A stretch of DNA of 64,000 bases from Hamiltosporidium tvaerminnensis FI-OER-3-3 (taxonomy: Eukaryota > Fungi > Microsporidia). Numbering within the stretch: position 1 is the first letter of the stretch; the number at the start of each line of letters is the position of its first letter. The position numbers and the translations under genes were made by a program. The DNA lies in the NCBI GenBank assembly GCA_022605425.2, contig CM061251.1, positions 1-64,000 on the forward strand, written 5' to 3'. The notes beneath the pieces were generated by a model. That model worked only from the letters and a program-made list of their open reading frames with translations. It was not told where the DNA came from and did no database searches. Shown here in pieces: positions 14,903 through 50,605 of this stretch.

Positions 14903-17039
14903 TTTTATTTATGATATGTCGATATTTATACTTTTATCCCATAAATTGACCTAATTTAAAACTAAATTGTTTTTAATTACTGGTTAATGATTAAAATAAT
15001 TTATGTTTTTTGTGTATTAAATTATCTTCATTTACCTATAATTCATATTATTGTATTTATTTATAGCTACAATTTATATCTAATACTTTTATAATTTTCT
15101 CGATTTGCACTTTCATATACTTTCGATTTATATTCAATTATCTTGATTTATATCGGTATATACCCACAATTTATATTTAATTATTTTCATTTATATTTTG
15201 TAATGTATTAAATTTATTTATACTTAACAAATCTTTATCTGTAACGGTAACATTAGAAGTTTAGCAGAAACAATTTTTATAATTGAGACTTTTAAAAATG
15301 TAAATTATCTGATTAGTACAATATTTATTGATTTGGTTCGATCAATCTAGTTCTTTAGAAAGATTTATAATTTATTATAAATTTAAATTCCGAATGTTTA
15401 TATTTACTAATATATTTGTGAGAAAAAAAACTTTAAAATTATTTTTATTTTGATTTTTTAGTTAAATATTAATTTATATATTTATTAGTTGTGAGGCTAG
15501 TCTCAGAAAACTGAATTTAACATTATATTGAATTTATTCCTCTTCTTAATTTAATTAGCTGAACTCTAATTTTTTAATCTTTTTATTTAGGTTTTTGTAA
15601 CCTTATCAAAATTTTTTTCTGTAAAAATTTTTTTGTTGTTCATATTGGCATTTTTATCAGCGGTCGAGTAATTTTCAAATAGAAATCCAAGAGTTGTTTT
15701 ATTGACATTGTTTTCCTTTTCTGTTCTATATACTTTTGGTTTTTTTACAGGTTTGTGTGATTGCCATTTTCGTTCTGTTGAGTGAAGCCTGGGATTTACT
15801 TCTATTACGTTTTCCCTTACCTAGGCATTTGTTCATCTGTGCATTTCTAAGTCTGTAAAAACAGTTTTTTTATGTAGCAGAATGTATTAGTAGATTAAAT
15901 ACTTCCATTACTTCCTTTTATTTAGATTGAAAATGTTTGAATTTATTCAGGTATAAAATTCCATGATATTATTCAAATCATAGTCGTTTTAACGGCCTAT
16001 TATTAATAGTATAAATAAATTGCCACAAAAAGATCTTTAGAAATTGATTCGCCTTAAAATTTTTTATGTATTGATAAAATTAATACAAATCAATCCCGAA
16101 CCGAGTTTCAAATCAATTCTATTTAAAAAAATAAAAAAAATCGATATCTTTCTTATGGTATACTAAAATTATTGAATACTGTTATGAACAGTAGACCAAA
16201 TATTGTTTTGACCAAATTAAATCTAGGAAAATATCATATTATACTTCCAATCACTACTATGAATTATGTAAGATTTATGAAAATATCATAGAAGCCATAT
16301 TTTTGATCGGAACAATTATTAATTTCTTTCATTTTATTAAATTTAACAATCCAAGTTGAGTAGTCGTCACCATGGCATTTTCCGATTATATAAGAATGGG
16401 AAAGTTTTAAAAGAGGAATATCAAATTCATAACTAGTTTATTTTAAAAGTAAATATTTCAGTAGAAATGCTTAATTATCAGAGTTAGCTAAAATATCGTA
16501 TTTTGATAAAATTTTTACGCGAAGAATTTAATTATTTATAAAGAATCAAATCAACTAAAAATTTTGTGAAATTATATGTAAAAAATATTTGATATTTTTT
16601 TATGAAAAATTATTTGACAAAATAAATTTCTTACTTATCTTCTCATTTGTTTTCTTGATTCAATATTAGTATTTTTTTTATAAAATACAGTTTTCATCCT
16701 CTTTGAATATTTATTGCGTTCTAAAATATAATTGGATTGAATATAAACACATAAAAATTATTCGCTTCTTAACGATCAGGCAAATTGCTGTGAAAATCAT
16801 TATTAAGAATTTGGGTGGGTTGAAAAATATATTAGATTTTCGGGTTTCCTTTGATATTTGTATATGAATAAAGTTCATTAAATTTATATAACTTTTCTGC
16901 AAAGTTACTTTATTGTTTTTCACGGGACTAATTCGAAAACCACGGGAACATGCACGTAAATTCTACATAAAAACATGGACACTCTGTTTTACTTACTTCG
17001 GTTAAAAGCTTAGCTTAAAGAGATAAAAAAATATACCCT

Positions 17040-17300
17040 TTTGAAATCCGGTAATGGTAGTACCTGTTGATATGAAATTGGAACCTATAGATGGACTTAG
17101 TGTAAATGCCAATCTACTTATGACAAATTATCTATCGATTTCGGTAAGTAAAGAGAAAGTGTGATTGCTGCCGATTCTCGCGGAGCTCGAAGTGAGGTTA
17201 GACTGCGATAACGGCGTGAAACAAAAATTAATGACCTCTAGATTATTCCTCACCATTACATAGGATCCCTACTTTTTAGATGAAAATCTTTAAAAATGGG
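17040..17300 (+). mobile_element. Possible retroviral-type integrase remnant
   Basis: Peptide scraps TYDKLSIDF, LDCDNG and SSPLH in integrase-core order; heavily decayed. Confidence 0.3.
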
Positions 17301-19254
17301 TGTCTTAAACGATAACAATGAAGTGTTATGGAATGGTTATATTATCTTAAATTGAGAACAGCGTTATATCCTTAAAAATTATTAAAATATGCCCGATTTA
17401 CCAAAAATGTATATAATGAATTAGAGTCACTTGTAATGAACCATAATAAAAATATGAAAAAATTCAATCAAAATATATTTAAACCTTTAATAATGTTTAA
17501 ATATGAATTAAGTTATCGTGGAAAGTATAATAGTAAATTTAGATGTTTTCATCATGTCTTTGTATTTAACTTGGATTTATCGGTTTCCGAAAATAGGAAA
17601 ATTCTAAGTTCTTTTTTTTGAGATCAATTAACTTATACAGGGGTATATGTTCCGTTATTTTTACAAACAAGTTCAAAATTTCTGATTAATGAATATTTTA
17701 AGCGTGAAACTCAACATGTCAAAACAAAACGACTAATAGATCTCAAAAAGCCGAAAATGTAATTCCATAGTATATTGTATTCTCATCTGTTAAAAAAAGA
17801 AAGAATCCTTTAAAAATAGATCTTTCTTGAGCAGAATTTCATCTGCAGGGTTTTTTGAAGTATTCATGACATATATATTGTATAAAGTCTGTAAGTAATA
17901 TGTTTTATAATATGTTTTATGACGTTTGAAATGGTATATCGTGTTTTTGCGACTCCCAAACATAAAATATGGATTGAGCATAAGATATCTTGTCTTTTTA
18001 GAACTTCAGCAAAATTGTTTTTTTTAAGGTTTTACTCGGCGCCATTAAGTTGATTTGGAAATCAAAATAATAGCTAATCTAAATTTATATTTGAAAATGA
18101 AGAACCGATTTATATGTTTTAAATATGTAAAAATATAATTTTTTAAAACAAATATATGTCGGTATTAAAAATATGTGGCAATGCAGAGGATTTTTACTTG
18201 AATTTTAGGCAAAAAGACTCAATAGACTGATCCCATGGGTCAAATATAGAATATTATTTTTCTTTCGATGGTATGCAGCTAACATCATGATTATATGGGC
18301 GTGCAATATTATCTAAAAAATAATGTTTTTAAGATTTATTAGGTTTATTTAGTTTTAACCGAAAAATCAAAATTTCGAATAATAAATCTTTATATTTTAA
18401 TCAATAGAATCTGCTTACATAGCCCAAAAATTCCTTATCAGTTTGGCTTTGACGAAAAATGGGGATATATTGTTTATATATGTGATATATCTCACTATGT
18501 ATAATTCAAATCTTAGATATAAGGTAAAGATGAAGGAATTATAAATTTAGTAGAATTAAGATATTGCAGAAATGTTTTTAAGCGCAGAAACCTCTATACA
18601 AATACTAAGCAAAAATTTATGCTTTTTAATTTCAAAACCATAATAAATTAAGGCTAAATACAATGAAGTCAGTAATTTACTTTCTAATGACTAGTCTGAC
18701 TCCGTGAAATTTATGTCACAAAATGTCTTCGAGGCAATCGGACCATTATTTTACAGTAAGTGACTATTAGAATATATTTACGTGCTTTTTTATGTTGTAA
18801 TTTAAATGAATTTTACCAATTTTTTTGCTTCGAGGCAATAAATGCATCATTTAGAATAAATAACTGATTTTAATAATTTAAACTCTTCATTCACGGTAGT
18901 AGTTCATAACATTACAATACAAATACTTTAACGTCTATAAACCACAAATTACCCATAATTTTCTAAATAGCAAACAATCTTAAATCAATTTCAATACCAT
19001 GTCTTCTTGAGACACAAAATAATCACACAAAGAAACAAACCAATATATTATAGGATGAAATTTTCCAAAATTTAAAAAATACTGAGAGACTACTTTCGGA
19101 ATATAAATTTAAACGCAAAATAAATCAAAATAAAATCGCATAGATAAAATGATTTCGATTATTTTTAGAATCCTTTGAATGAATTAGTTTTATTTGCTTA
19201 AAATATTTTTTTAAAGACATAATAGATTTTAAATCAAAGAATAAACATTTTTAA

Positions 19255-19791: not shown

Positions 19792-20846
19792 CTGGGGTTT
19801 CTTAAAAGTGAAATTTAAGAAAAAAAAAAATAAAGTAATTTTTAAGTAGGTTAGGTGATAATTTTTTAAATATATTGGAGAGAAATAAATTTTGAATTAT
19901 TTTTAGAAATTAAAAAAATCATTTATTTAAGATAAACAAAATCACATATTTAAATGAAATATAAAGGGTTTTTAGTATGCAGATATTTTATATAAGCAAT
20001 TAGGTGTTCGCTTTATCTATTTTGCTTTATTTAGATTTCTGTCGACGTGTATTTGATAAAATTATATATGAATTCTTTTTTATGTTTGCAGTTCTTAATA
20101 TTTATTTTTAAAATTAATATTTTTTTAAACGTTTGTATGAAACGTTTATTTTTGTCGAGTTTTACAAAAAAAGCTTTTCTTTTTAACTTATAAGATATGA
20201 TATAAATATTTTCTGGCTAATGTATTTGAAGCCTCTAAATATTATAATGTGTTGTTTTCTAACAATACCATTCTAAGTTATTTTTTTTTAATAGCTTACT
20301 CCTTCCTTATGGATGGAACGCAATCCAAGAATGAATCATAGGATTAGCCAGGTTATAGGTGTTTCAAATACATTTTTCTTTTTATTGGTTACATTGTCAG
20401 CCCAACGCAAACTTTTGGAACAAAAGATGAAGAGGGCACAAACTGGATCCCAGATTAATACTCAAGGAATTTTTCGAAATTTTTTTTGCAAATAGAGCAA
20501 AGTGTATTCAATATATGTCCTTCCCGATTATTATTTTATTTTCATAATATATTTTCCGTTAAACTGTAAGCTTGGCAACCATATTTGTTCTAAAATTTAA
20601 TTAATCGTTTAAAATGAACATATTAGATATTTTATATAAATTTAGACTCAATTTTGCATATTTTTGTTTATGAGTTTATAAAAATTATGGAAAAACTTAA
20701 AATATTGTATATAGCATTATAAAAACACAATAGATATTTATACATAATAGAACAACTAGAAGGTGCAGAAATCTAAACTAAATGAAAAGATTCTTAAGCG
20801 AATTAATTTTAACTATTTTACTAAAACCAACACACAAATCGATCTC

Positions 20847-21381
20847 TTTTTTTAAAAATGTTATATATTTTCAAAACCGTGGCTAGTATTATATTATTTC
20901 CATGAAATTAACGCGGTTCTGTATTTAATATAGATAATTACTCTCTAACACTCTATCGGTATATGTTAAGATACCTAAATTTCAAAGCCTTTTGTCTAAA
21001 CGGTGTGTAGAGCCAGATTATTTGGTGAGGAAGCTGCTCGGGTTGTTCAATGTGCCTTGCCTGGTGTGTAATCGTAGGTCGAAACCTACCCTTGGCCCCT
21101 TCAGGGCATCGCACCATTTTTGCGTATTATACATTTCCGAACCTAGTAAAATCCTGCCAAGATATATTTCGGCATTTATATGGATCTAACTAGGCAGTGC
21201 AATGTTATATCGAAAAACATAGCCTGGTACTTTACTTTTCCAGCTTTATACAGATCACATAGAAAAATCGAAAAACTAATATGGTTTTATTCCCACCAAA
21301 AATCTAAACATTGATATTCACACTAATCTCACATATAATGGCCAACCAGGTGGTTGTTTATGTAGATATCCTTATCTCACC
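20847..21381 (-). mobile_element. ~720-nt structured element, diverged internally deleted copy (copy E)
   Basis: Reverse complement aligns to 33314-33445 and then 33630-34040 (e.g. GATTTTTGGTGGGAATAAAACC, ACATTGCACTG, GAAATATATCTT, AGAACCGCGTTAAT). Confidence 0.85.
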
Positions 21382-22513
21382 TAAAAGCATACTAAAAAAC
21401 TATTTGGGAATTAAAATTTTGTTTTTTATAAATTATATTTAAATTTGATGAGGTCTTTTATTGAATTTTTTAACATACTTTTGGTTATAAATGGTTATAT
21501 TTTTTCTAGTAAAATTAATAGACACAATAAAATCAGTAATCAACTAATTTTTTTTGAAATAAAATATTTTAGGTTGTTCTGAATACAAAATTATTTGTTA
21601 AAGGGTTTTTTTTATCTTTATAACCCGTTGCTTTCGTTTATTTCCTTTAAATTTCTGCAAAATACTATCTTTTATATCTTCAAACCACTCAGCACCTATC
21701 GCATTCGAAAATATAGGTTCATTTTTAGTCTTTACATATTTTTTTCCCCCAATATTAATCCATTCTGCTTTATTTTGTCTATCTATTCTATGCCTAATAA
21801 TATCAGAAATGTATAATGGATTCGTGTATACGAATATGCAAAACATACAAAGAAAAATTACCATGATTTTGCAATCAATTGCTTATTTATAATTATAAAT
21901 TCAAATTAGTTGCAACTTAATGATAATTGTATTACTAATACTTTTGAACTAATTGCAATTTACCTTTTCCGTTCGACAAAATTTTAAGGTAATTGATATA
22001 TCATTATATTGATAACCTCAAACTTAAGATAAAATTTATAGAAAACATATGATTTAACACCAATTTTTCGATTTTTGTTGGTAAAACATTCGATTCTTCA
22101 AACTATCATCAAATTGTTTAACATACCTGACTAGAATAAATGCGTCATGATTTATCTTTTGTACAAAATGTTTGCTTATAAAATGTTCAACATGAAAATT
22201 TAACTAGAATATTTCTTAATTTTATTTTCTTGTTTACTAATAGTGCTTTTTAGATGTTTAAAAACCAAAGTTTTCGCTGATTTTTTATGAAAAAAATCTT
22301 GCTCTTAATATTTAATTTTCAACAGTATGTTAAGTATTATATGCGATTCGATATCATTGATATTTTAATATTAATCCGATTTATAAAGAACAACGATTTA
22401 CCTAATTCATTCTCTTTTATCTCTCGATGTCGAGGATGAACATATGAAAGTTTACCATTTGCTTCTTTTATTTCGTTTTGATGCAGGAGTATAGGGGATG
22501 GGCCTATAGATCT

Positions 22514-22613
22514 AGTGGTTTATATCCCGAAAAAATGGCAACCATGAATTTCACACCAATTCTACGCACTTATTGCCAACCAGATCGTTTTTAATGTGGT
22601 TATTCTCTCTACC
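22514..22613 (-). mobile_element. 5' ~100-nt fragment of the structured element (copy F)
   Basis: Minus strand GGTAGAGAGAATAACCACATTAAAAACGATCTGGTTGGCAATAAGTGCGTAGAATTGGTGTGAAAT...ATAAACCAC aligns to 33314-33413. Confidence 0.8.
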
Positions 22614-22704
22614 TTATGAAGAACAAAACATTAAATGATTCAATATCTATAAAAATTGATTTTTATTTATTATTTAAATTTAAAATATATTTCATACCTT
22701 TTTG

Positions 22705-22799
22705 AGTCTGATTTAGAAAAAGAAACAACAGTGGTAAAAGAGTTAGAAGAATATGTATAAAAATGGTACAAATATTTTAACCCAGAATCTTATTAAAAA
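22705..22799 (+). mobile_element. 95-bp 5'-truncated insertion of the RLE non-LTR retrotransposon with 16-bp TSD
   Basis: Encodes (E)SDLEKETTVVKELEE, matching the C-terminus ESDLEEETTVVKQVEE of the 46100 ORF, then AATATTTTAACCCAGAAT as in that copy's 3' UTR. Flanked by ATTTCATACCTTTTTG at 22689-22704 and 22800-22815. Confidence 0.9.
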
Positions 22800-22910
22800 A
22801 TTTCATACCTTTTTGTATACTGATGAAAAATCATATGATATCAAATATTTGAATTTTCTTTACAAATTGCATAATATTAAAAACATTTAAGATTATATTT
22901 TTTTTATACT

Positions 22911-24515
22911 CCCACTCTTCTTGAAAGAATAGGTATTTATACATAGTTTGGAGTAATAGAAGATAGCAGAAGAATTCCAACAAGTAAGTCGTTTGAGGAA
23001 TTACAGACTAAACTTATAGCCCGAGTAGAAAGACTTTGTCACATGAGATTAAATGGAGGAAATTAAATATAGTCCTCAATCAAAATGTGATTTCTTTACT
23101 AAACTATCATATAGATACACTCGACTAGAACTGGCTCACTTCTTTAAGTTAGATGATGCAGTGCTTGCGGTGTTTTTAAAGAACAAAATACATATTTGCC
23201 CAAGATGTAAATACCCTCTATACTTTTCTCGTAAAAAACTTGGAAGAGGTTTTTATAGTGTCGAGTTTAAAAGCGAAAATATGCTTTTGCAAGTCTTGGA
23301 TTGTTGGGAAGAACAAAAAGATACATCAGCTAGAAGAGCAGAAATCCTAAAGGCTGTGAATAATAATAAAACTCACTTTTCTCTAATTAAAAACTTGTAA
23401 AAAATAAAATACGGTTTAGAAGAGAAAGTCACAAAGATCAAATTGCAAGAAGCTCAAGTAGCAAACATATATAACAAAATCAAAAAGCGAAAACGACATT
23501 CGAAGTTATATAAGCTCGAAATAACGAGCTAGTAGATGTAAATGACTCCTCAAGATAGTTAAAGAAAGGGTGTGTAAGACACGTGATGATGTAGTGTTCT
23601 GTTATATCCAAGATAGAAGTGTATTATATGGTGTAGAAGGTATAAGTCAACACTGCAACCGGTCTAAGAAAAAAGTAGACCACTTAGCAATGAGATGTTA
23701 AAAATGCTTGGTCATGACTATACTAGATGACACAATGAAGTGGTACGATGTATACATTTACTATTTCATAATAAATATAATTTTGAGTCTTTAAAACGAA
23801 TTAAAAGCCAGTCAGTTCAAGAAATTATTGATAAAGAGTATGCAGAGATAAGAGTGGACACCAGAACAAAAACCGATGTTAAGATTCGGGGTAATAGACC
23901 CGATATAATTATTTTAGACAAGAGACAGACTAAGATATCACTCATCGAAATAAGAATCACATCCCAAGAATCTCTTCAAATAGTTGAAACAGAGAAGCTT
24001 AAGAAGTATGACCTATGTGCAAATGAGTTAGATCTTATTTATAAATGTAGTGTAGAGATAATTCCTTATGTGATGACCTGAGACGGTATTGTGACAAAAT
24101 ACCATAAGACGTATGTTAAGAGACTGCAAATACCCATGAATGTAGAGGCATATATACAATCAATAGTACCAAGAAGACAGTCGAAACAATTTCTTTTGAT
24201 CGACGAAGAGGACTTGAGTCTAGACCAAATGCCGAAGAGAGCTGGGAGAGAGCATCATAAGGTGCTATTGAAGGGGCTGAGATGCATAAACAACCAACAC
24301 CCCTTTTAAAGCAAGTAGACAACGAGAAAGATGGTGTTTAAACGGAAAATACAAAAAATATTGTACCCCTTAATATGGATGCATAAACACAGCTAAGGAA
24401 CCAAAAACTAATACAAATGAAGGGTTGGAGTTGGAGGAAGAGCAAGAAGTGGTTGAAATGGTGGAAAAAAAATATATAAAAGAGAAAAAATTGTAAACCC
24501 TGAATTTAATTAAAT
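22911..24515 (+). mobile_element. 5'-truncated, decayed copy of the RLE non-LTR retrotransposon
   Basis: ORF pieces 23053-23400 and 23740-24081 are homologous to 46100-47950 (KLDDAV, EYAEIRVDTR, RPDI, VETEKLKKYDL); many stops and frameshifts. Confidence 0.93.
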
Positions 24516-26278: not shown

Positions 26279-26637
26279 TTTAAATCGTGGGCTTTCTTTC
26301 TTTTTTTTTATATTTTTTTATGTTTTTTTATATTCGTTTATATCGTTTAAAATTTTCCTTTTTGTATTTTTTTTAATTCGTTTATATGAGTTTCTGATAG
26401 AAAAATTGGTTTTTTTATTTATTTTTGCCGGTACAAACTTTTATGAAGTGACGTATCAAAATGTATTTAAATATTTAATTTGTTAATTTTTTTAATACAA
26501 CTTAAACATTTTAAAATATATTTATATTCTTATTTGTAGTTTGTCTTAGGAGGTTTTAAGTTTTCATTTCTATTCAATCAATTATATTTATTTTATATTT
26601 ATTTATTATATATTTGTAAGTTTAAGATTACATTTGT

Positions 26638-26787
26638 AAATTTCTAAGTTTTTAATTTCTAAGTTTCTAATTTATATGTTTTACTAAGTTTCTAAGTTTT
26701 TCTAATTTATATGTTTTTCTAAATTTCTAAGTTTCAAATTTATATGTTTTTCTAGGTTTCTAAGTTTTTCTAATTTATATGTTTTTC
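26638..26787. repeat. AT-rich minisatellite of TTTCTAAG / TTTCTAATTTATATG units
   Basis: About four ~35-bp imperfect units visible directly. Confidence 0.75.
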
Positions 26788-27617
26788 TTTGCTTTTTTTA
26801 TTCCCCACACTTTATAAAAACTCTTTAAAACTTATTTATGCTTTTTATAAATTGTCTTAAAATTTATTTTTGAAATTTGTACATTTTACAGTAAAAATTT
26901 GTAAAAAATCTTTACAAATTGAAAGAAAAAAAATAAAAAGGAAGAACAAATTTAAAAAAAAGTTCATAAAAAATACCAAAACGCATTTATTTACAAACTG
27001 TCAGTTTATAGAAAGAATTATAAAGCTGAATATCAATATTATAAACGCACGTATAAAATAATGTTTATTTCCTTCTATAGCAAGTCCCATGTATACAAAA
27101 AACAGTGACTGTATAAAAAGAACTTCTCCTTTTAAAAAGGGGTGTTTTATTTATGTGTCTATCAGAAAATACATCCTCATTGGTCAGAACAGGTCTGCGA
27201 ATGAATTTCATCATTTAAACACAGGGGTTTTTAAATAAATGAATATATATAATTTTATGTGGTAATACGATTATAGGTTAACGAATAAAAAGGTGTTAAT
27301 TATTAGAATATATGTTTAAAGGGTGTTAGTAACAAGTATATGTATGAGGGTGGTAATTATTAGAATGTATGTTTAAAGGGTTTTATTAAGTGTAGTTGTT
27401 AATACGGTGTTAAATGTTTATTACACTACAATTTTCTTAAACCAAAATTTCTGTAAAAAAAAATATTTTTTAAAAACTTAGAAAAAATTGAAAAACTCAA
27501 AAAAATAAGAAAAATATAGGAAAGTAAGAAACAGATAACAATTTAAAAAACTAAGAAAAACTAAAATGTAAGAAGAATTAAGGAAAATGTAAGAAAATTA
27601 TAGAAGTATTCAGAAAA

Positions 27618-27716
27618 CATAAGAAATTAAAAAAAAATATAAGAAATTAAAAAAAAATATAAGAAATTAAAAAAAACAAAGGAAATTAAAAAGAACATAG
27701 GAAATTAAAAAAATCT
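27618..27716. repeat. ~20-bp tandem repeat ATAAGAAATTAAAAAAAAAT
   Basis: About five units, the first three nearly identical. Confidence 0.75.
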
Positions 27717-27834
27717 ATGACGCAAAAATAAAAAAAGAAGCAAGAAATAAAAAAAGCCCAAAAAATTTAAGAAAAACTAAGAAAAAAAGGAGAAATAAAA
27801 ATTTATTAAATAAAGAGAATAAAAAGAAGGGCAA

Positions 27835-28101
27835 ATGGATAGAAAAATAATCTTAGAAAATGCACTTAAAAGACTTTTAAAAGAGAAGAAATATTATTTA
27901 AAAGAATTAGAAAAGCTTAAAAGTAAAGAGAGTAATAATATGGATGAATATGAAATACGTAAGTATAATGAAAAGTGTAGTGAGTGTGTTGGTTGTATCA
28001 GTGAGTGTAATATTAATATACAAAAGTTTTGTTGTGAGTTAAAAGATATTTTAGAGAAAAGTGGAGACAATAGCGAGGTATTGAAAGAAATAGAATGTTA
28101 G
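27835..28101 (+). CDS. TBCA: Tubulin-specific chaperone A (TBCA/Rbl2)-like, 88 aa
   Basis: ILENALKRLLKEKKYYLKE and DEYEIRKY..SEC match TBCA IKxxxxKRLxKExxxYxKE / DxYxIKKQ; GGG upstream of the ATG. Confidence 0.8.
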   Translation: MDRKIILENALKRLLKEKKYYLKELEKLKSKESNNMDEYEIRKYNEKCSECVGCISECNINIQKFCCELKDILEKSGDNSEVLKEIEC

Positions 28102-28219
28102 TGTTAATTATGGAAAAGAAGGGTTTTTAAGTGATGATTGATATATGGGTTAGTATCCTGGATAAAAAAGTAAAAGGGTCTTGTTTAAGGGGGGTTTCGG
28201 GATCAGTATTTTTACGTTA

Positions 28220-28485
28220 ATTAAAGGGGTCTTATTTATTATGTCTTTTTTTATTTAAATTTACAAATAAAGGGGGCTTAATAAACAGTTTATTTTACGG
28301 TAATTAAAGGGGTCTTATTTATTATGTCTTTTTTTATTTAAATTTACAAATAAAGGGGTCTTAATAAACAGTGAGTTAACAGTAATTAAAGGGGTCTTAA
28401 TATATGCTAATATTTGAAAGTAAATATACAAATAAAGGGGTCTTAATAAACAGTATTATTATTATAATTTAAAGGGGTCTTATTA
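28220..28485. repeat. ~83-bp minisatellite with seven AAAGGGGTCTTA cores
   Basis: Cores at about 28223, 28269, 28306, 28352, 28388, 28434 and 28471 (two per 82-83-bp unit). Confidence 0.85.
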
Positions 28486-28608
28486 ATTTCTAATTTCTAC
28501 AGAATTTTCTAGCTAAGATTTACGTTTAAAGAAATTTTTTAATCATTTTGTGGTACAAAGTTTCATTTTTATTCTTTTATTTGTATTTTCCGTGTTACAG
28601 AAAAAAAA

Positions 28609-30381
28609 ATGATAGGGAAAATATTTATAGGTAAATTACCTACAAATGTAGAGAAGATATGTGGTTATGGAGATGAGGTGGTAATTAAAGGAAAGGATAA
28701 ATTGTATTTTTACAATTTAGTAGGTAAAATATATAAGGATGTGGTATGTGACATGGAAATAGAGAAGATGGTGGTAGTAGATGAATATTTGGTGGTATTG
28801 AGTGAAGACGGACGTTTATATTCCATGGTATTAGGTGGGTGTGAGTTAGAAATGGTGGCAAATAATGTTAAGGTGTTTAAGGTATTTAAAAAGGTGTATT
28901 TTATATGGAGATGTGGTGTTTACAGATTAAAGATAACGAGTGAGGGAATTAAAAAAATGAGAATTTGTAATTTTGAGGAAGGAATAACCGATTTTTGTAT
29001 TTTTGAGAACAAAATAAATTTGGTGGTGAAAAAAAAAGTATATTTTGGATATTTCGATTATAGAAAAAAAGATTCCAATATTTTTGGGGAAGCTTCTTTT
29101 TTAGAGAATTTGGATGTGTATAAGATAGAGTTTTGTGTTACAGGTTGGTGTGTGTTTGAAAATCAAACCGATTTATTTATTTTAAGTCCCAACTGTTTAT
29201 ATTCTGTAATCAAAAAACCAGAAAAATTTTATAAATTTTTCTTAACTAAATTTCACATTTTTATTTTAAGTGAAAAAGTACAAATTTATTCTTTATTGGA
29301 TTTTAAATTGGTGAGAGAATTATCATTAACTGCATTTGGGGGTAATTATGACAATATATATGAATGTATATGGCTCTATTCTAATATATTATATGAATTT
29401 AATATAAATGAATGTAATAATAATATATATCAGAGTTTGATACAAAATAAGTTATTTAGAGTGGCATTCAAATGCTTTCCAATAGAATTTAAAAATATAT
29501 TTTTAAATTATTCTATTTATAATTTTGATAGATCAATTGTAAAAAACGGTATAAAATTTTATGTTTTATCTGGACAAAAAATAAACTTTGAACAGAAAAA
29601 TATTATAACTATTCTCAGAAATAAGAAAGACAATACAGATTTTTACAATTTAAAGTTTGTATTTAATTGTAAGTCTATAAATGTAAGTCACAGAATAAGT
29701 TTAAAGGTGATTATTGAGTTTCTATATAAAAGATTTAAACTTTTTTACAAAGATTACGATTTTCTTGGATATTTTTTTTATCTAATCAAAGATGTAAAAA
29801 ATTTTAAGCGATTAGTGAGACATCTGAAGAAGAAAAATTTAAATTTAAATTTTATTTTAAGAAAGAGATATCTTATCAAATCAAACACTGATTTGCATTT
29901 AATTGCTTATTATTATAAAAAAACAGATTTTTTGAAACTCTTAGAATTTTATTTTGAAACGAAATCTTTTAAAAAATTTTGCAATTTACTGATCAAAAAG
30001 CCGAAATATTGTACCAGAGAAAACCTTTACAAATACATTTCAATTGTTGTTTTATTTAAATCAAAAAGAATCACCAAAATATTTTCTGATATGTTTAATA
30101 CACACGTATTATATTATATGACAAAGCATAAGGATTATAGAAATCTTTTTTTCTATTTAAAAAATCACTTTTGCTTTTCTTCTGACACACAACTCGTCTG
30201 TAAGATTGTAATTACTGCTGAACAATCTCTGAAATTTAAAATTTTGAAAATGTTTTGGACAAAGAAAGAAACAAATGATAATTATTTTACTTTTTACAAC
30301 ACACTTAAGTTTTTAGTGTTTAAAATTACAAATATTAAAATATCAGATAAAAGTAATCATTCAATTGTATTAAAATACTGA
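28609..30381 (+). CDS. Divergent VPS18/PEP3-like protein (beta-propeller + helical region), 590 aa
   Basis: LTKFHIFIL and IWLYSNILYEFNINE...IYQSLIQNKLFRVA resemble Vps18 LTxFHxLLL and FWxYxxxxIFExxxxxE..WxxYLxxxxFxxA; a long ORF in very AT-rich DNA. Confidence 0.55.
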   Translation: MIGKIFIGKLPTNVEKICGYGDEVVIKGKDKLYFYNLVGKIYKDVVCDMEIEKMVVVDEYLVVLSEDGRLYSMVLGGCELEMVANNVKVFKVFKKVYFIWRCGVYRLKITSEGIKKMRICNFEEGITDFCIFENKINLVVKKKVYFGYFDYRKKDSNIFGEASFLENLDVYKIEFCVTGWCVFENQTDLFILSPNCLYSVIKKPEKFYKFFLTKFHIFILSEKVQIYSLLDFKLVRELSLTAFGGNYDNIYECIWLYSNILYEFNINECNNNIYQSLIQNKLFRVAFKCFPIEFKNIFLNYSIYNFDRSIVKNGIKFYVLSGQKINFEQKNIITILRNKKDNTDFYNLKFVFNCKSINVSHRISLKVIIEFLYKRFKLFYKDYDFLGYFFYLIKDVKNFKRLVRHLKKKNLNLNFILRKRYLIKSNTDLHLIAYYYKKTDFLKLLEFYFETKSFKKFCNLLIKKPKYCTRENLYKYISIVVLFKSKRITKIFSDMFNTHVLYYMTKHKDYRNLFFYLKNHFCFSSDTQLVCKIVITAEQSLKFKILKMFWTKKETNDNYFTFYNTLKFLVFKITNIKISDKSNHSIVLKY

Positions 30382-31164
30382 AAATTTGCTCTAAATTTTA
30401 AATAAATATTAATTTGAGAGGTAGTGATTGAGAAAGCCATAAACAATCTTAAATCTTAACTTTAGTCTTTTGTTAACACTTATTTTTACATAGGAGAAGT
30501 AAAAACAAAAAAAAATACTTAAAATCTGAAGTTTGCTTTTAAGAATAGAATAGAATGTTTTATTTCCAGATTTTAATATAAACTAAGCTTAAATTAAATT
30601 TTATTTAAACATGCTCTTTAGTCTATAAAATGTTCTGTACGAAACAAATAATTGAAAAATATATTTTTTCTAATTAATTTGATTTTTAGTAATCTCCAAT
30701 TAAGAAAATAATATAAATTTAATAAAATATTTTTTTGGTGTATAATGTAAGTATATAATTGTATACTTATACACTAAGAGTATTAAAATATTAACTTTAA
30801 TCGTAATTAGTTTATAACTTATATTTATTCTCTATTTTTCTTAAATTTTTTTTATTAAATATTTTGTTTAAACAAATTTACCAAAAAGACAAATTGATAA
30901 AAAAATGTAATAATTTTATTCTAAAAGATAATTTTTTAAAAAATTGAATAAAATGTATTTTTGATTTTAATTTATCATTTTAAGAAAATGCAAAACAAAA
31001 TATTAAAATTTATGATAATTAAAGCAATTTGATGTTTTATAGAAATAAATTTTATGTAATGTTTTTTTATTAAATCTATGATTTATAATTATAAAAAAAT
31101 ATATTCTTAAAATCCAGATTGTAATTATTTTATTTTATTAAGATTTTCTAATTAAATATATTCC

Positions 31165-31349
31165 TAAGATTGTAATTATAAATTTATATTAATGCTATTC
31201 ATAAGATTGTAATTATAGATTTATATTAATGATATTAATAAGATTGTAATTATAGATTTATATTAATGATATTCATAAGATTCTAATTATAGATTTATAT
31301 TAATGCTATTCATAAGATTGTAATTATAAATTTATATTAATGATATTCT
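31165..31349. repeat. 37-bp tandem repeat x5 (TAAGATTGTAATTATARATTTATATTAATGMTATTCA)
   Basis: Unit starts at 31165, 31202, 31239, 31276 and 31313; degenerate units flank the array. Confidence 0.92.
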
Positions 31350-31788
31350 TATCTAAGTTATTCTTAAGATTACAATTTTTTAAAAAGATATTCTTAAGAT
31401 TGTAATTATTCTGTATTAATGATATTCTTAAGAATTATAGTCTTGAGTTTTCTAACAAATGGCATTCTGTAATTTTAAATAATTTTTTATTCAAATAAAG
31501 TTATTTCTATAGATTATAATTTTATTTGAAAGTAAAAGATTAAAAAATAATATTTTATAAAACTTTAGATTTGGTTGGTTTTTGTCAATATATTTATTTC
31601 TTAATAAAGAAACATAATTTAAAAGAAATTGAAATTTTAAAAAAATCATTATCAGTGACCAATAATATTAACTTTGGCAATTTATTGTTTTTAGATTCCA
31701 AAAATTTACCTTAAACGGGATATATTAAAGGAGGGAATTCTCCTTTAAGTCTACATTATTTTTAAATTTTTTTCATCTAAAAAAACAC

Positions 31789-32328: not shown

Positions 32329-33313
32329 CGAATAAAAAATTGTAGAAATTAAAATACAAAAAATCGACCAATTGAATGATAAATCAAACCTACATATATA
32401 CGTAATTTGTTTTATTAAATATTTATTTTACGTTTTTTATATATTATAGTTTAAATTTTTCGAGTTACACTTTTTAGAAAAAACGTTTTAACACTTAAGT
32501 TCTTTTTTTATACATATTAATGTTTTCTAATTTATTTGTCTTTTAATAAATAAATTTCGAATACAAATTTAATATGGTTAGCTTATCAAAGATTAATTCG
32601 TAATGAATAATATGCCTAACTTTTTTGAAAAAATATATTTTATAACAATAAACTATCATCTAGATTTATTATCCTTGAACATAATAAATAAATATGTTTT
32701 ATTAAGTTTACTACTTTTCTATAAATATCTTGGTCGATTATAAAGTTTTTTAAAGCCCAAATAAATCCGTCCCTAAGTCATTTTTTAAGAATCAAAATAT
32801 GTAAAAAAATATATTATCTATATTTGAGCAAAATTCAATTTTAAAAAAGATCAATCTTTCCTTTATAATTAACTAAATAGTATGATAGAATCATTAAATA
32901 AAATTTTAAATAAATAAATATAAATCTAAAAAACATTAGATTTTTAAATGAAATTATTGTGAAAAAATATTTTTATTGATTTTTCTAAATTAAACTAATA
33001 TGTTTTAATCATTTTTCATTCAATAAATACTTTTATTTGTAATATTACATGAAAATACATAAAAAGCACAAATGAATAAAAAAAATGATTATTTTAAAAG
33101 AAGTTGGCTGAAAGTGTAAGAAGTAGGTAGTATGTTAGGTTTTTCCTTTAAATAATTGTATAAAATACTATAAATTTACAAAATTTCTAGAAATATAATA
33201 TATGTCATTTTTTTTCTAAAAAATCCATAATTTTCTTTTTATCGTAAATTAAATAAATTAAAATTCAATTTTGTAAATAAAACAAATTAATATTTTTTGT
33301 TAAAAATAAGAAA

Positions 33314-34050
33314 GTGGAGGGAGGATAACCACATAAAAAACTTTCTGCTTGGCAATGAGTGTGTGAAACTGGTGTGAGATCATTGTTTGGATTTTTGGTG
33401 GGAATAAAACCACACTACATCTTCGGTTGTTCCATGGGAGTTGTTATGAGGAGGAGAGGTCTAAGAAATGGAGAAACTTTTTCCACAAATTTATTTGTAG
33501 TTTTTTATGTAACCAGATTGCAGACCGCAGCTGAACATGTAGGTAATTGCCATGTAAAAACATGGAAACCTAGCCTTGCTCACTCGGGTTAGAAGACTTA
33601 GCGCCTGGGAGATATAAAACAAAAAACCATTTAAAGCCGGGAGAGCTAAGTAGCAGGTTATACCTGTTGGTATGACATTGCACTGTCTAGGTGGACCCCA
33701 TGCAAATCTCTGAAATATATCTTAGCTAGAAGTTTATTGGGTTCAGAAAGTGTAGAGTAAGTGGGAATGCTGCATAGTCTTGGGGGAGCCCAGGGGGGGC
33801 TTCGGCCTTCGATCACACTCCATGCAACGGACATTAACGAACTCCGGGCAACTTCCTCGCCTATTAATTAGGTTCTACACACCTGGTAAATGAAAGGCTT
33901 TGGGACGTAGGTATCGCAGGGTTACCGATGGAGTGTTGGGGTAGCAGTCATTTATGTTAAACCTAGAACTGCGTTAATGTCATGAAAACAAATATAACAC
34001 TTGCCACTGTTTTAAAAAAGATGTGATACTTTTAAATAAAGTTTATTTTA
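33314..34050 (+). mobile_element. ~720-nt structured non-coding SINE-like element (copy A) with 19-bp TSD
   Basis: TTTTGTTAAAAATAAGAAA at 33295-33313 and 34051-34069; near-identical to 44461-45185; GC-rich relative to flanks; many internal helices. Confidence 0.92.
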
Positions 34051-34689
34051 TTTTGTTAAAAATAAGAAAATATTTTAAATTATCTGCAAATTTATAATAT
34101 TTAGAAAGAATTTGGAATAAAAACCAAAAATACGTTTTAATTGTAAAAATTTATCATATTTTACAGATTTAGGATTATTTTTCAAGAAATTTAAAATATG
34201 TTTTTTTATAAGAATTTAAATTTTTTTCAAAACTTTAGCTATAAAATAATAATTACTTTTTAAGTTTTTACATGCGAAAAAAAAATATTTTGTAAAATAC
34301 GATCGAATTAGGATAAATCATGTGGAAGACTTAAAGAGTTATTTTTTGATGTAAATCATAGGGAATATTTAAATATTATTAAAAAATTAGACATATGTGA
34401 ATGCAATATTTGATTTACTTTATATCTTAAGAAAATTAATTGGTACCTTGGGTCACCATGGGTTATATGTCTACATATATCGAGAATCTGTAAAAACAAT
34501 GTATAAAATCCAAATGTCCATCCGAAAACCCTCATTACCAATTCTAATATCTTTTCGTATAAAAATGACTTTATATTTTCGATCACAAAACTCAAAAGTC
34601 TTGATTTTTCTAAACTATGAAATACTTTTGTAAATAAATTTTAATTATATTCTGGATAAAATTCTAAAAACTTAATCTCTGAAATATCT

Positions 34690-43470: not shown

Positions 43471-44460
43471 ATTATTTTATGCATATATTTAACTTGGAAC
43501 ACACAAATAAGTTCCAAAGAAGCTACCCGTAAACATCAGCAGTCATTATATTACATTTCCACTGAAATAATAATGTGACTAAAAGGAACTATCAGTAAAT
43601 CCTTCACCGCATGTAAATCCTTTTTATTTTTCTCAATACTAGACCATCTATTATTTATGTGTCAATTACATCGAGAATTTAGCAATCTTGATCAGTTAGT
43701 TTAGTACCAAAAATCTAAAGAATCACATATATCGTCCAGTTTTTAAATATGCAGCTCGTAACTTCTTTATCGTATATTTTTTTTATAATTTAAATTCTTT
43801 GGCATTGTAGTTTATATACATTTATACATGGAATGTGTTTTCTGAAACGATATATTCATTAATAATATTAAATTTTGTTCAAATTATGTGTCTAGAAGAG
43901 TACAATACTTTTTTAATTTTGTTTCTTTGAAATAAAGTAAAACAAAAAGCTGCGAAGAAGCGGTAGAAAGAATAAATAAATATTTTTTACCATTATTTTC
44001 ATATGCAATATCCTGTTTCTCGAACAAACGAATGTTAAAAAGGTATGAATTAAATATGATATCAGGAATTTATAAGGGTGACAGGAGATGAATAAATTTT
44101 AGACATGGCCATACGAGGATGCATAAGAAATAAGGAATTCGTAAATGTTTAAAGGGTAATAGAATATTGTTAGCTTGTTAGCAATGACATTAATTAATAA
44201 TAAATCTATTGTCATTTCATATTTATTTTATAGTATTTTCTTAAATATTTTAAGAATACGATAGCAATAACTTGATTTGCAAGACCAATTATTTTAAGAT
44301 TAAATTCAATATTGTTTAACTACTGTTTTTTTATTTCTGTATTTTTATTCATTTTTTTATTTTTGCTACTTTCATATCAAAAAATTAAAATTCATAATCA
44401 ATTTACGAGACAATGAGTAATTTAACAATTTAAGTGAATAATCTATTTTCATAATAAATG

Positions 44461-45185: not shown

Positions 45186-45354
45186 TTCATAATAAAAGGT
45201 TTTACTTTGAAATTGAAATACCAAAAAAAAATAAAATATATTTTAAGGAAGATTTACAGTCAGGATTTGTACTAAAAATATTTTAATTAACATTTTAAAT
45301 TTAGAAATCTTTTTTAATTTCTTTTTTGATATCAAAATTAAATATTTTTCTTAT

Positions 45355-46066: not shown

Positions 46067-49000
46067 TTTTATTTAATAAAATTCTGGGTTAAAATATTTT
46101 TACCAATTTTTTATGTTTTCTTCTACCTGTTTAACCACAGTTGTCTCTTCTTCCAAATCCGACTCTTCATTTATGTTATTGGTCGATTCCTCTAAAGTGG
46201 TTCCTCCTTGTAAAATAAAGGGGGCTTTATATTTTGGTTTAAAATTTTTGGCACCATCTTCCTCTGTTTTCGCTTCTTTTAAAGGGGGTATTGGTTCCTC
46301 ATGCATCTCTGATCTCATAATAACACCCATTGACGCTCTCTCCCAGCTCTCTTCGGCATTTAGTCCTGACTCAAGTCCTCTTCGTCGATCAAAGGAAATA
46401 GTTTCGACTGTCTTTTTAAGTACTATAGACTGAATGTATGCTTCTACATTCATGGGTATTTCTAGTCTTTTAAGATGAGATTTATGATATTTTGTCACAA
46501 TACCGTCCCAGGTCATCACATAAGGGATTATCTCAACACTACACTTATAAATAAGGCCCAACTCATTGGCTAGCAGGTCATACTTCCTAAGTTTTTCAGT
46601 TTCAACTATTTGAAGTGAATCTTGGGAAGTGATTCCTACTTCAATGAGTGTTATCTTATTCTTCTTCTTATCTAAAATAAATATGACCGGTCTGTTATTC
46701 CGAATTTTAACATCAGTTTTAATTCTGGTGTCCACTCTTATCTCTGCATACTCATTATCAAGAATTTCTTGAACTGAGTGGCTCCTTATTCGTTTTGAAG
46801 ACTTAAACTTATATCTATTTAGAAGGAAAAGGAGAAGGTGTAGGCATCTAACCACTTCATTATGCCGTCTAGTGTAATCATGGCCTAGCATTTTTTCACA
46901 TCTAGTTGCTAGATGATCCACAGTCTTACCAGACTTCCCGCAATGTTGACACACACCATCTGCTCCCCAGAATACATTTCTATCCTGGATATAGCAGAAC
47001 ACAGCTTCATTTCGTGGCCTAATATTTCCTCTCTTTAGCCATCTTGAAGAGTCACTAACACTCACAAGCTCATTTTTCCTTGCATTATATAACTTTGAAT
47101 GGAGTTTTCGTTTTTCTATTTCGTTATATAGTTTTGCAAGTTGAGCTTCTTCTAAACTTTTCTTAGTGACTTCTTCTACCAACCTGTACTTTACTTTTAA
47201 GAAGCCTTTTATTAGTGCAAGATGGGTTTTATTATTATTCTCCACCTTGAGGATTGCTGCTCGTCTAGTTGATATTTCTTTACTTTTTTCCAGACAATCC
47301 AAGAGTTGCAGAAGCATATGTTCGCTTCGCAACTCAACACTATGTAGGCCTCTTCCAAGTTCTGTTCTAGGAAGATACAACCGCTCTTTACATCCTGGGC
47401 GGAGATGTATCTTATTTTTAACCAACACCGCACGCACTGCATCATCTAACTTAGAGAAGTCAGCCGGTTCAAGTCGAAGTACTCCTATGTGGTAGTTGAT
47501 TAACGATATCGCATGTTGATTGATTGCAGAAAATAAATTTTTTGCATTTAATCTAGTGTGACAAAGTCTTTCAACTCTTGATATAAGTTTGCTCTGTACT
47601 TCTTCAAATGAGCTACGTGTTGGGATTCCTCTGCTATCTTCTATTATTCCTAAATATTTGTAAACACTAACACCTTCTAGAAGAGTAGCAGTATCTTCAC
47701 AACACGTATCATTTGTGGCTGACTTCTCTTTGTTAATCTCTAAGCCAATCACCTCTAAAAATTCCTTTGCCTCGCCTGTCATAGCACTCAATGTGGAGCT
47801 GTCTTTTGCAAGGAGCTTAAGATCATCAATAAACAAGAGATGATTAGTAGAATGGGATTCTGCGTCTGTTTGTACTGTCACTTTTGTGTATTTTTCATTA
47901 AGCTTTCGGCTTAATGGATCCATACACAACACAAATAACGATGATGACAAACTATCTCCTTGCAGAATCCCTCTCTCAATGTTCTTTCATGCTTTTTTCG
48001 GGCTTCATATATAAATTTCAATTTTGATATAATTACCTTGATAATTTCAGAAGCAATCAAGATAAGTAAGGTTGATGCATTGAGTTAAATAAGCATAATC
48101 TATTGAATCATTAGCTTTTTTAACATCAATCCATGTTGCCTTAAGATTATTTCCATACTCTTTATTTAAGGCAATATTCAGTAGAGCCTGCTCTTTCGCT
48201 CCCTGCACACCTCTTACCGCCCCTAATTGGTTCTCTGCAAGCAACCCTCGCCTTTCCACTTCAAGTTGAACGACTTTCGTTACACACTTTGTCGTTAACT
48301 TATAGAGGTTAGACATACAAGTGATTGGCCTGTAGTCAGAGCCTCTTCGTGGAATTCCTTTCGGTATCAAATACGTAAGCCCGCTGTAAAACCAATCAGC
48401 TTGAGTTGTTTCTTCTAAACATATATAACTTTCACAATATCATAAAGATATTTGTGAAGAGTTGTAAGTTTCTTAATGAAAAAATTGTAAATACCATCAA
48501 TTCCAGCAGCTTTCCAATTGGGAAGCCAATTAATGATATTTACAAATTCATCAAGTGAAGGAAACGTGGTCGGATGATTATCTGATACAAATGGAATCAA
48601 ATAATCATCGTACGTGACTGTGTCATCATTTTTGTTCCACATTGTAGACCAAAAACTCACAATTTCATCACGGCTAACCACATGCTCGGATTCTACACGC
48701 TCAGATAACCCACGATAAAATCGACCTCGGAAAAGCTCAAACATACGATTCTCTTTTCGGAATTGCTTCCTACTTTCATGCATCGTAATTTTTTTCTCGT
48801 AAACATTCAAAGACTCATTCTTCTTAACTAAAGCCTCAGAAAGATCAGTTACGCTGCTCAAGTTTAAATTAAACTCTCGCATGATTTTCTTAAGGCTCTT
48901 CGTTTCCGAAGTGGTGAGCTTTTCCTGCTTACGAGCCTTCTCGAGAAGATCTTTGGAAAGTACTAACTTAGAAATTTTACTTTCTATGTTTTTCTCTCAA

Positions 49001-49870
49001 GCGGATCTAGGCTTCTCTTTACGTGTTGCCTCGTCATAGCATATCTGCGCAGCTTGCATGATATACGCGGCTTCCGTAATTGACTCAGGTACATGAGCTT
49101 TGGCTTATTCACCGGCTACTAGATTAATGAGATCAGAACTTTACTATCAACCAATTCATTTGGATGTTTTCTAGTTCGGACCACCACTTTTCCAATTTCG
49201 TTCTCCGAGATTTCTTTGATTTTACTCAAGAATTTATCTCTTAGATTTATGTACTCCGTGGTGTCGGTCAAGGTGCATGTATCAGCGAGACAAGTGGCGA
49301 TTCTACGTCGCTCTCCATTCTCTTCTGATTTTACTTCCTTTCCCATCTCACTTTGTGCCAATTTTTTTAACACTTCGAGAGTTTCAGTGCAGCCGAATTT
49401 CTCATTATAGTACCTGTGAAGCTCTGTCCAGCCATTTCTTGGCATTCTTTCAAACCTTGTCTGTACTGCAAAAAAAACAATTCGAGGCCATTCCTTCGGG
49501 TCGGCTGTTACGGAGTCGAATATCGTCCGCAATGCCATTAGCCTGTTACCTTCCGGAATAGCTAGAGTACAGGGGCTTGTCATGTCGTACGATGGCTCGC
49601 ACGCAGAGACTTCAACCGAAGAGGGAACTGGTGCATTAGGCGAAGGTAAGATGTCAAGCCCACTATTTTGCATTTTACTGCATGTTTGGCTTGGTGGTGG
49701 AGGTGTTATTGTTGTGTAGGAGGAGGAAGGTAGGGGAATCGCCGGTGGGTGTAGCTTACATTTTTGTATCTCACTATCACTCTTTTTCACCTCATCAGCG
49801 TCGTTTGCAGCCTTTATTTTGGTATTATTCGATATTTCGCTGCTAACATTTTTCTTTCTACCCATAAAAC
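46067..49870 (-). mobile_element. Near full-length but disrupted RLE-type non-LTR retrotransposon (R4/Dong-like): RT, CCHC knuckle, restriction-like endonuclease
   Basis: ATG at 49865; WKAAGIDG, YRPITC, WIDVKKANDSI, RGILQGDSLS, FIDD, YKYLG, CQHC..HLATRC, RHN, RPV..IEV..KLRKY. Split into four ORFs by stops and frameshifts. Candidate TSD TTTTTTCAACCA at 46055-46066 and 49871-49882. Confidence 0.95.
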
Positions 49871-49927
49871 TTTTTTCAACCAAATTGCTATATATTTTTA
49901 ATATTTTTATATATATTTTATATTTTG

Positions 49928-50605
49928 GTGGAGGGAGGATAATCACGTAAAAAAACATCTGCTTGGCAATGAGTATGTGAAATTGGCGTAAAGATTATTG
50001 TTTGGATTTTTAGTGGGAATAAAACCACAATAAATTTTCGGATGCTCCATGGGAGTTTGTATGAGGAGCAGAAAAGGTCTATGAAATGGCGAAACTTTTT
50101 CTAAAAATATATTTTGTAGTTTTTATGTAACCAGATTGTAGATTGCTGTTGAACTTGTAGGTAATTGCCATGTAAAAGCATAGAAATCTAGCCTTGCTTA
50201 CTTGCGTTAGAAGACTTAGCACCTAAGAGATATAAAAAGTTTGTATGACATTGCCTTATCTAAGAAGATCCTGATTTTGTTGGCGAGTTATATCTTAGCT
50301 GGAAGTTTATGGGGTTCGGAAGGTGCAGATTATATAAGAATCTTACATAGTCTTGGAGGGGTTAATATGTAGGTTTGACCTACGATCGCAGTCTATGCAA
50401 CGAACATTAACGAACTCCGGAAAACATATCCCTTATCAATTGGGTTCTACAAACTTTTTAGATGAATGGCGTTGGCGTCGTAGGGGGTGCCTATCCATGG
50501 AGTGTTGAGGTGCAGTTATTTGTGTTAAACCTAGAATGCGTTAATGTCATGAAAACAATGTAACACTTGCCACTGTTTTTAACGATTTGATAGTTTTTAA
50601 ATAAA
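49928..50605 (+). mobile_element. Structured element, diverged copy C (~45-nt internal deletion)
   Basis: Starts GTGGAGGGAGGATAA like copies A and B, colinear to ...AACACTTGCCACTGTTTT...TTTTAAATAAA; lacks the equivalent of ~33620-33665. Confidence 0.9.

Follow-up and report, generated by a model that had tools for sequence, protein, structure and literature searches.

Which kind of mobile element produces the non-coding units of about 730 bp that recur in a 64,000-nt window of the genome of Hamiltosporidium tvaerminnensis FI-OER-3-3, and what moves them? H. tvaerminnensis is a Daphnia-infecting microsporidian whose assembly comprises 21.64 Mb in 17 contigs with TTAGGG telomeres; interspersed repeats make up 39.56% of the assembly, and 25.45 points of this are labelled "other" (PMC10542269). 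A preliminary description, prepared from the letters of the window (that is, the whole stretch analysed here), had proposed an abundant retroposon resembling a short interspersed nuclear element (SINE). Considering the window, the whole genome, and related assemblies together, we can say with good confidence that the units are best explained as a non-autonomous retroposon family of Hamiltosporidium of the non-long terminal repeat (non-LTR) type, which is SINE-like in the loose sense of the EhSINE elements of Entamoeba histolytica and is most likely mobilised by a long interspersed nuclear element (LINE).

Results

Copies in the window

Copy A was used as the BLASTN query against the 64-kb window. 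All six copies listed in the preliminary description were recovered at coordinates within a few bases of those given, and a seventh (copy G) was added. The copies, and the target-site duplications of copies A and B, are as follows.

33314..34050, + strand: copy A, full length, in which AAATAAA is followed by a U-rich trailer of 10 nt; not present in H. magnivora IL-BN-2
33295..33313 (upstream) and 34051..34069 (downstream), no strand assigned: target-site duplication of copy A, 19 bp, TTTTGTTAAAAATAAGAAA
44461..45185, + strand: copy B, full length, 95% identity to A; also in H. magnivora IL-BN-2
44448-44458 and 45186-45196: target-site duplication of copy B, 11 bp, TTCATAATAAA
59696..60412, + strand: copy F, full length, 88% identity to A
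49928..50605, + strand: copy C, old, 75% to A, with an internal deletion of ~45 nt; orthologue in H. magnivora IL-BN-2
20846..21372, - strand: copy D, old, 72-77%, lacking element nt ~127-318
22508..22610, - strand: copy E, a fragment corresponding to element nt 5-109, 76%; nested among LINE fragments
16743..17460, + strand: copy G, the seventh and new copy, full length, ~65% identity

Together, the seven copies sum to ~4.2 kb, which corresponds to 6.6% of the window. The BLASTN match of copy B to copy A spans 44461-45190 (+) at 95%. The element measures 727-737 bp, which puts it at the upper end of the strict SINE size range (~80-700 bp), and the shared 5' start GTGGAGGGAGG and 3' end ...CTTTTAAATAAAG(T) could be read directly in the copies. 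The common 5' start, which had been claimed from the window, was found in 30 of 30 copies retrieved from the genome. The possibility that the old copies C, D, and G represent separate active subfamilies was rejected, because the nearest relative of each is the main family and none has a closer one.

Target-site duplications and an empty insertion site

Each copy is a discrete insertion of ~730 bp that has an exact 5' end and lies in an AT/T-rich target, of which 10-19 bp are duplicated; lineages differ in the insertions that they carry. The different duplications that had been proposed for copies A and B are both present, and duplications proved to be general in the family: of 48 young copies, 38 lie between exact repeats that measure 10-19 bp (median 13), versus at least 9 bp in only 0.7% of the control trials, in which flanks from different loci were paired. 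In the 30 retrieved copies, the flanks are unrelated from locus to locus.

A gene for a 179-aa protein adjoins copy A, and the protein is identical in four draft assemblies of Hamiltosporidium (strain key in PMC6944219). The orthologous loci (L074-L077) were compared from this gene onward. In H. magnivora IL-BN-2 (PIXR; contig PIXR01000058, L074), the site of copy A is empty and consists of the upstream flank, a single TTTTGTTAAAAATAAGAAA, and the downstream flank. Two H. tvaerminnensis strains (IL-G-3 and FI-OER-3-3) and H. magnivora BE-OM-2 carry the insertion, the evidence in the last strain being limited to the 5' junction plus 28 nt at the end of a contig. The empty-site comparison suggested in the preliminary description thus gave a precise empty site with one copy of the 19-bp duplication, so that the element is to be regarded as a discrete insertion that was mobile in the recent past. 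IL-BN-2 does contain copies B (95%) and C (75%), which is what would be expected were identity a measure of age. The presence or absence of copy A cuts across the species labels, with both H. tvaerminnensis strains and BE-OM-2 filled and IL-BN-2 empty; ancestral polymorphism, introgression, and taxonomy are possible causes of this pattern.

The preliminary description had assigned the copies to a non-autonomous element inserted by target-primed reverse transcription. General duplications, unrelated flanks, copies standing free of any longer element, and an empty site in a sister lineage all support this assignment, and the element is very probably such a retroposon.

Abundance and age of the family

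The genome (21,638,905 bases in 17 contigs) was searched for loci sharing words with the element. This search gave 1,446 candidate loci; this and the other copy numbers below are first-look candidate counts and not a census. Forty of the 1,446 candidates were scored, and all 40 were full length with 97-100% identity, which greatly exceeds what chance would give. Further copies, which turned up by chance in sequence flanking other loci, showed identities from 95% down to 65%, and the overall range in H. tvaerminnensis was 99% to 65%. Contigs of H. magnivora BE-OM-2 also hold copies of the family, at 92-95% identity, together with one old copy at 70%. Judging from these identities, the family comprises a young burst plus old relics, and the spread from 99% to 65% together with the copies in H. 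magnivora points to long-lasting activity.

The best-conserved part of the element is a block at nt 631-690, and conservation is also comparatively good over the first ~105 nt. Conserved 23-26-mers gave no match in two scans of metagenomes and one of GTDB. There was likewise no match by nhmmer in 14-kb samples of Astathelohania contejeani and Vairimorpha apis, which represent too little DNA to be meaningful.

The 3' end and the source RNA

The AT-rich or A-rich tail of the preliminary description was borne out only in part: the end is not simply A-rich, but it contains a poly(A) signal, a short U-rich trailer, and, in a few copies, true poly(A). After AAATAAA, most copies show only G or GT ahead of the duplication. 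About a dozen have related U-rich trailers of 9-13 nt that resemble GTTT(T)ATTTT (GTTTATTTTA, GTTTTATTTTA, and similar), and 3 of 48 copies add poly(A) past the trailer and ahead of the duplication (A4 in locus L004, A8 in L059, and A15 in L027). In H. tvaerminnensis, A[A/U]UAAA averages 20 nt upstream of mapped poly(A) sites (PMC10542269). Judged from the junctions rather than from RNA, the source of the element is, on balance, probably a transcript of RNA polymerase II (Pol II).

A dispersed LINE of the R2 superfamily

The window also contains a LINE that is the putative autonomous partner of the element. The features belonging to this LINE, including its reverse transcriptase (RT) and open reading frame (ORF), are as follows.

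46067..49866, - strand: putative autonomous partner, 3.8-kb LINE encoding RT and a C-terminal CCHC / restriction-like endonuclease; in this copy the ORF is split into three pieces; absent from IL-BN-2
46055-46066 and 49871-49882: 12-bp duplication of this LINE, TTTTTTCAACCA
22704..24515 (22704-22800 and 22906-24515), + strand: old 5'-truncated fragments of the same LINE family, 76-84%, both ending at the LINE 3' terminus

The best protein matches of the RT ORF at 46100-47950 (-) are in H. tvaerminnensis, with up to 99% identity. The window copy is broken, whereas 11 of 12 sampled LINE copies hold an intact single ORF of 1,253 aa, which runs from the second base of the element and is followed by a 3' untranslated region (UTR) of ~35 nt; the sampled copies (L032-L042) are essentially without a 5' UTR. 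Young LINE copies are 97-99% identical, and the LINE in the window has its own empty site in H. magnivora IL-BN-2. From the sequences of its copies, the LINE family looks currently competent. The first-look candidates numbered 1,285 for the LINE 3' end versus 363 for the 5' end, and this 3.5 times lower number of 5' ends indicates the usual 5' truncation.

Pfam recognised only RVT_1 (7e-28) in the LINE protein, with no Exo_endo_phos and no N-terminal zinc-finger or Myb domain. When the protein was compared with PDB by phmmer, it matched R2 proteins only, with a weak E value (8e-4), and the alignment included the CCHC...RHN...PD...EV...K stretch. Because the sole structure matches are R2 proteins and the alignment extends across the CCHC and endonuclease stretch, the protein sequence places the partner in the R2 superfamily, but the family is dispersed: the 12 LINE copies have 12 unrelated flanks, and no site-specific insertion was seen among them. 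The LINE duplications are 12-19 bp long. The LINE 3' terminus reads TTTA(TT)AAATAAA(A) and is followed by 0-2 nt and, in one case, by the trailer plus A11. The 3' UTR includes the stretch AACCCAGA, and LINE subfamilies at 80-91% identity keep the 3'-UTR motif TTAACCCAGA (L066-L068; window ~46067-46100, -). A related element of Astathelohania contejeani (L072) ends ...ACCCATTTAAATAAAA. The hexamer TAACCC equals one unit of the C-strand telomere repeat, perhaps by coincidence.

The element and the LINE family cluster together in many loci. Fragments of both are nested or adjacent in L003, L011, L016, L024, L029, L050, L059, and the window at 22508-24515, and in L015 (G000:C5:648672-652403) a young copy of the element lies within the last ~60 nt of a LINE copy.

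Probable mobilisation of the element by the resident LINE

The 3.8-kb LINE at 46067-49866 probably mobilises the element, as judged from features that the two have in common. These are overlapping duplication lengths (12-19 bp for the LINE vs 10-19 bp for the element), the TTTAAATAAA terminus, and a T-rich target. Relative to the start of the duplication, T is enriched at -8, -2, and -1, with counts of 29/38, 29/38, and 25/38 for the sites of the element and of 9/11, 7/11, and 9/11 for the LINE sites, the enrichment at -8 having a p of about 6e-6 for the former and p = 0.006 for the latter. Extra bases at the 5' junction are common to both, and one copy of each duplicates its first ~20 nt there (L014 and L038). 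The abundances are also similar, with the 1,446 candidates for the element facing the 1,285 candidates for the LINE 3' end, and identities of 97-99% are found among the young copies of both.

Several points weigh against this account. The similarity between the ends of the element and the LINE is not significant, since the observed score was reached by 51/300 and 71/300 shuffles. The common terminus is ~10 nt of low-complexity sequence in a genome with 74% A+T, and TTTAAATAAA occurs 17 times in the window. Furthermore, the element is without the LINE 3'-UTR motif TTAACCCAGA; if this motif is the recognition element, the element should not be a template. Its best-conserved block at nt 631-690 is without a LINE counterpart, and no conserved RNA fold was found in the element as a possible handle for the RT. 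The target preferences come from 38 sites of the element and 11 of the LINE, in which the position of the junction is partly ambiguous, the LINEs examined are one lineage and its close relatives among the twelve LINE families reported in this species, and the copies examined were mostly top-scoring, which gives a bias to full-length copies. In addition, the indexed sequencing runs that contain the element are 19 DNA-type runs in 7 studies, with no RNA run.

Some of these points would favour an element of the same kind that is mobilised by another RT, either from another reported LINE family or from an extinct one, possibly with a longer common 3' tail. The lack of significant 3' homology with the examined LINE, the missing TTAACCCAGA, and the number of reported LINE families are all in its favour. 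However, the duplication lengths, the terminal motif, the T-rich positions, the behaviour at the 5' junction, the age, and the abundance all fit the examined LINE, which has many intact copies, and three divergent LINE subfamilies show no better match to the element. Mobilisation by another RT is accordingly considered unlikely.

Derivation of the element from the LINE was rejected, as blastn, end alignments with shuffles, and blastx against 120 RT proteins gave nothing significant. In three places, the LINE 5' end lies head-to-head at 50-67 bp from the head of a copy of the element (window 49866-49928, L032 at ~1573-1640, and L033 at ~5306-5357). Targeting of the LINE to these heads was rejected as probably an artefact of selection bias, because the query contained the head of the element, so that such loci ranked top, and because the spacers are unrelated.

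The following steps are proposed for mobilisation by the resident LINE. A source copy would be transcribed from its first base, most likely by Pol II, which is favoured because the T5-T6 runs conserved in the element (see below) would stop RNA polymerase III (Pol III) within 200 nt. The RNA would be cleaved ~10-13 nt past AAUAAA, after the U-rich trailer, and then polyadenylated. The LINE protein, with its RT and restriction-like endonuclease, would nick a T-rich target and prime cDNA synthesis on the RNA of the element in trans. Priming would usually occur just past ...UUUAAAUAAA(G/GU), the terminus common to the LINE, and less often in the trailer or the poly(A). The short RNA would nearly always be copied through to its 5' end, which would give the uniform 5' start; by contrast, the 3.8-kb LINE is often 5'-truncated.

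Pol III signals, coding capacity, and RNA structure

A true Pol III SINE whose head comes from a diverged or unrecognised small RNA would be a different kind of element. Microsporidian small RNAs are highly diverged, so that Rfam models can miss them, and the relatively good conservation of the first ~105 nt would fit a head of this kind. However, ARAGORN found no tRNA in the element, and Rfam gave no family at the gathering score and only chance-level matches at E<=10. Patterns of the A and B boxes were no commoner than in shuffles and were misplaced, none lying within the first 270 nt. Moreover, runs of T5, T5, and T6 at nt 79, 165, and 188 (spanning nt 79-193) are kept in 49-50 of 50 copies, and runs of this kind terminate Pol III in general. 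The AAUAAA end and the occasional poly(A) tails also speak against a Pol III transcript. These scans agree with the earlier statement that the element has no convincing A/B box and no convincing tRNA, 5S, or 7SL head, and a true Pol III SINE is very improbable. The label "SINE-like" consequently holds in the loose EhSINE sense, whereas the element is not a SINE by the strict Pol III definition, the head being absent and the internal T runs being conserved.

None of the ORFs in the element is longer than 77 aa, and a search of 5.8 billion proteins gave no homologue of the longest one, in line with the earlier finding of no conserved ORF. No HDV-like (hepatitis delta virus-like) or hammerhead ribozyme from Rfam that could explain the exact 5' end was found. 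The z-scores of the minimum free energy were ordinary (-0.84 in the sense and -0.99 in the antisense orientation), and RNAalifold with 14 copies of 65-100% identity gave a consensus of -8 kcal/mol with a positive, that is penalising, covariation term. In a UUCG hairpin at nt ~484-499 of copy A, pairing is kept through two-sided changes between old and young subfamilies, as judged by eye. The structured-RNA interpretation was dropped in view of the ordinary folding energies on both strands and the weak consensus fold, the UUCG hairpin being a single local feature.

LTR and DNA-transposon alternatives

The copies might instead be solo LTRs or the end of a longer element of the LTR, DIRS-like, or another coding type, and an RT ORF is indeed bracketed by copies B (44461-45185) and C (49928-50605), which share one orientation. 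However, B and C are only ~74% alike, the intervening RT element possesses ends and a duplication of its own (46067-49866) and is missing from IL-BN-2 while B and C remain, and a host gene sits between B and the LINE. In addition, the duplications vary from 10 to 19 bp instead of being fixed at 4-6 bp, and the ends are GTGG... and ...AAAGT with no TG...CA. Attachment to a longer coding element or UTR, which the preliminary description had named as a finding that would speak against it, was looked for, and the copies were found to be unattached, with unrelated flanks in 30 copies. The divergence of B and C, the independent RT element, the variable duplications, and the ends other than TG...CA refute the solo-LTR interpretation at this locus, and the chance that it applies is very slight indeed. 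An equally negligible probability is given to a non-autonomous DNA transposon, either a miniature inverted-repeat transposable element (MITE) or a Helitron derivative. Both types have been reported from microsporidia, H. tvaerminnensis among them, but the junction data contradict this interpretation: the first and last 30 nt are not inverted repeats, in agreement with the earlier statement that long terminal inverted repeats are lacking, the duplication length varies while one DNA transposon family makes a fixed length and Helitrons make none, and the two ends differ, the 3' end having a poly(A) signal and, in some copies, an A tail.

Other features of the window

The window (on contig C6) starts at 1-574 with a telomere of 95.7 perfect CCCTAA units, so that it is the first 64 kb of a chromosome and the repeat density given above is subtelomeric. 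Its G+C content is 26%. At 28-30 kb there is a strong G-over-C skew of +0.45 (region 28001-30381), under which lies a 590-aa ORF (28609-30381, +) that has no Pfam domain and is conserved in other Hamiltosporidium assemblies. AT-rich tandem arrays with periods of 20, 30, 35, 37, and 83 bp occur between genes at 26633-28488 and 31151-31433.

Discussion

The closest precedent for the element and its putative partner is the EhSINE1/EhLINE1 pair of Entamoeba histolytica. EhSINE1 is an abundant, polyadenylated, non-coding element of 500-600 nt without a tRNA- or 7SL-like region, and the work on EhSINEs already notes that such elements fail the strict definition of a SINE (PMC2996970, PMC1635306). 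Both EhSINE1 and the Hamiltosporidium element are abundant non-coding retroposons of 500-730 nt without a plausible ORF in AT-rich parasite genomes, and both have conserved ends, long variable duplications (22 bp in the EhSINE1 example), T-rich upstream DNA, and dispersed sites. The two LINEs are also alike in having a restriction-like (REL-ENDO) endonuclease; that of EhLINE1 is not strictly sequence-specific, and the LINE described here is dispersed. There are, however, clear differences. EhSINE1 has ~70 bp of its 3' end in common with EhLINE1, whereas ~10 terminal nt are common here, and EhSINE1 transcripts are known to be abundant and polyadenylated, whereas those of the Hamiltosporidium element are predicted ones. 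Furthermore, EhLINE1 has two ORFs, whereas the Hamiltosporidium LINE has one leaderless ORF from its second base, and the host is a microsporidian here and an amoebozoan in the case of EhSINE1.

Like canonical Pol III SINEs, the element is short, non-coding, LINE-dependent in the account preferred here, flanked by duplications, and present in high copy number; unlike them, it is without a Pol III head or A/B boxes, contains T-run terminators, and at ~730 nt is at or above their usual size. The RIME/ingi and NARTc/L1Tc pairs of trypanosomes are likewise non-autonomous non-LTR partners without a Pol III head (PMC2996970). The R2 "SIDE" elements of Drosophila are also non-autonomous, lack a Pol III head, and derive from R2, which has an endonuclease of the same superfamily as the LINE described here. 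All of these are internally deleted LINE derivatives that clearly resemble their LINEs along their length or at both ends, whereas the Hamiltosporidium element does so only in the terminal decamer. R2-superfamily LINEs and the putative partner have in common a single ORF with RT followed by CCHC and a PD-(D/E)xK-type nuclease, but R2 and most of its relatives, R4 among them, insert at one specific site such as rDNA, whereas the partner is dispersed in AT-rich DNA with 12-19-bp duplications.

The surveys of microsporidian transposons consulted here name LINEs, LTR elements, Helitrons, Mariner, Merlin, piggyBac, and MITEs, and no SINE-type family. The preliminary description did not recognise the element as a described family, and we found no paper describing it in the literature searched, to which the comparison was confined, Dfam and Repbase lying outside it. 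The family is real, abundant, and recently mobile, and it is apparently undescribed, although its kind is already known from other AT-rich parasites such as Entamoeba. The element together with the LINE would form a concrete LINE/SINE system whose activity is apparently recent, the surveyed literature listing no SINE-type element for the phylum. Because isolates, and also the two Hamiltosporidium species, differ in their insertions, these could serve as presence/absence markers, which would be usable in population and coevolution studies of this parasite of Daphnia.

That the element and the LINE have almost no 3' homology is the one feature for which a transposon specialist would seek an explanation. 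The R2-superfamily clade is known for strict recognition of its own 3' UTR. A tentative and rather doubtful explanation is that an R2-superfamily LINE mobilises in trans an unrelated non-coding Pol II RNA, with which it has in common only the ~10-nt UUUAAAUAAA motif and the U-rich trailer. Hamiltosporidium serves as a model in the question of why certain microsporidian genomes exceed others tenfold in size, and the family plausibly explains several points of the "other" repeat fraction. If mobilisation in trans is true, relaxed template choice would have let a ~730-nt RNA reach about 1,400-2,000 copies, around 5-7% of the genome, and these copies would make up a share of the 25% of "other" repeats that lie behind the expansion of genomes in vertically transmitted microsporidia.

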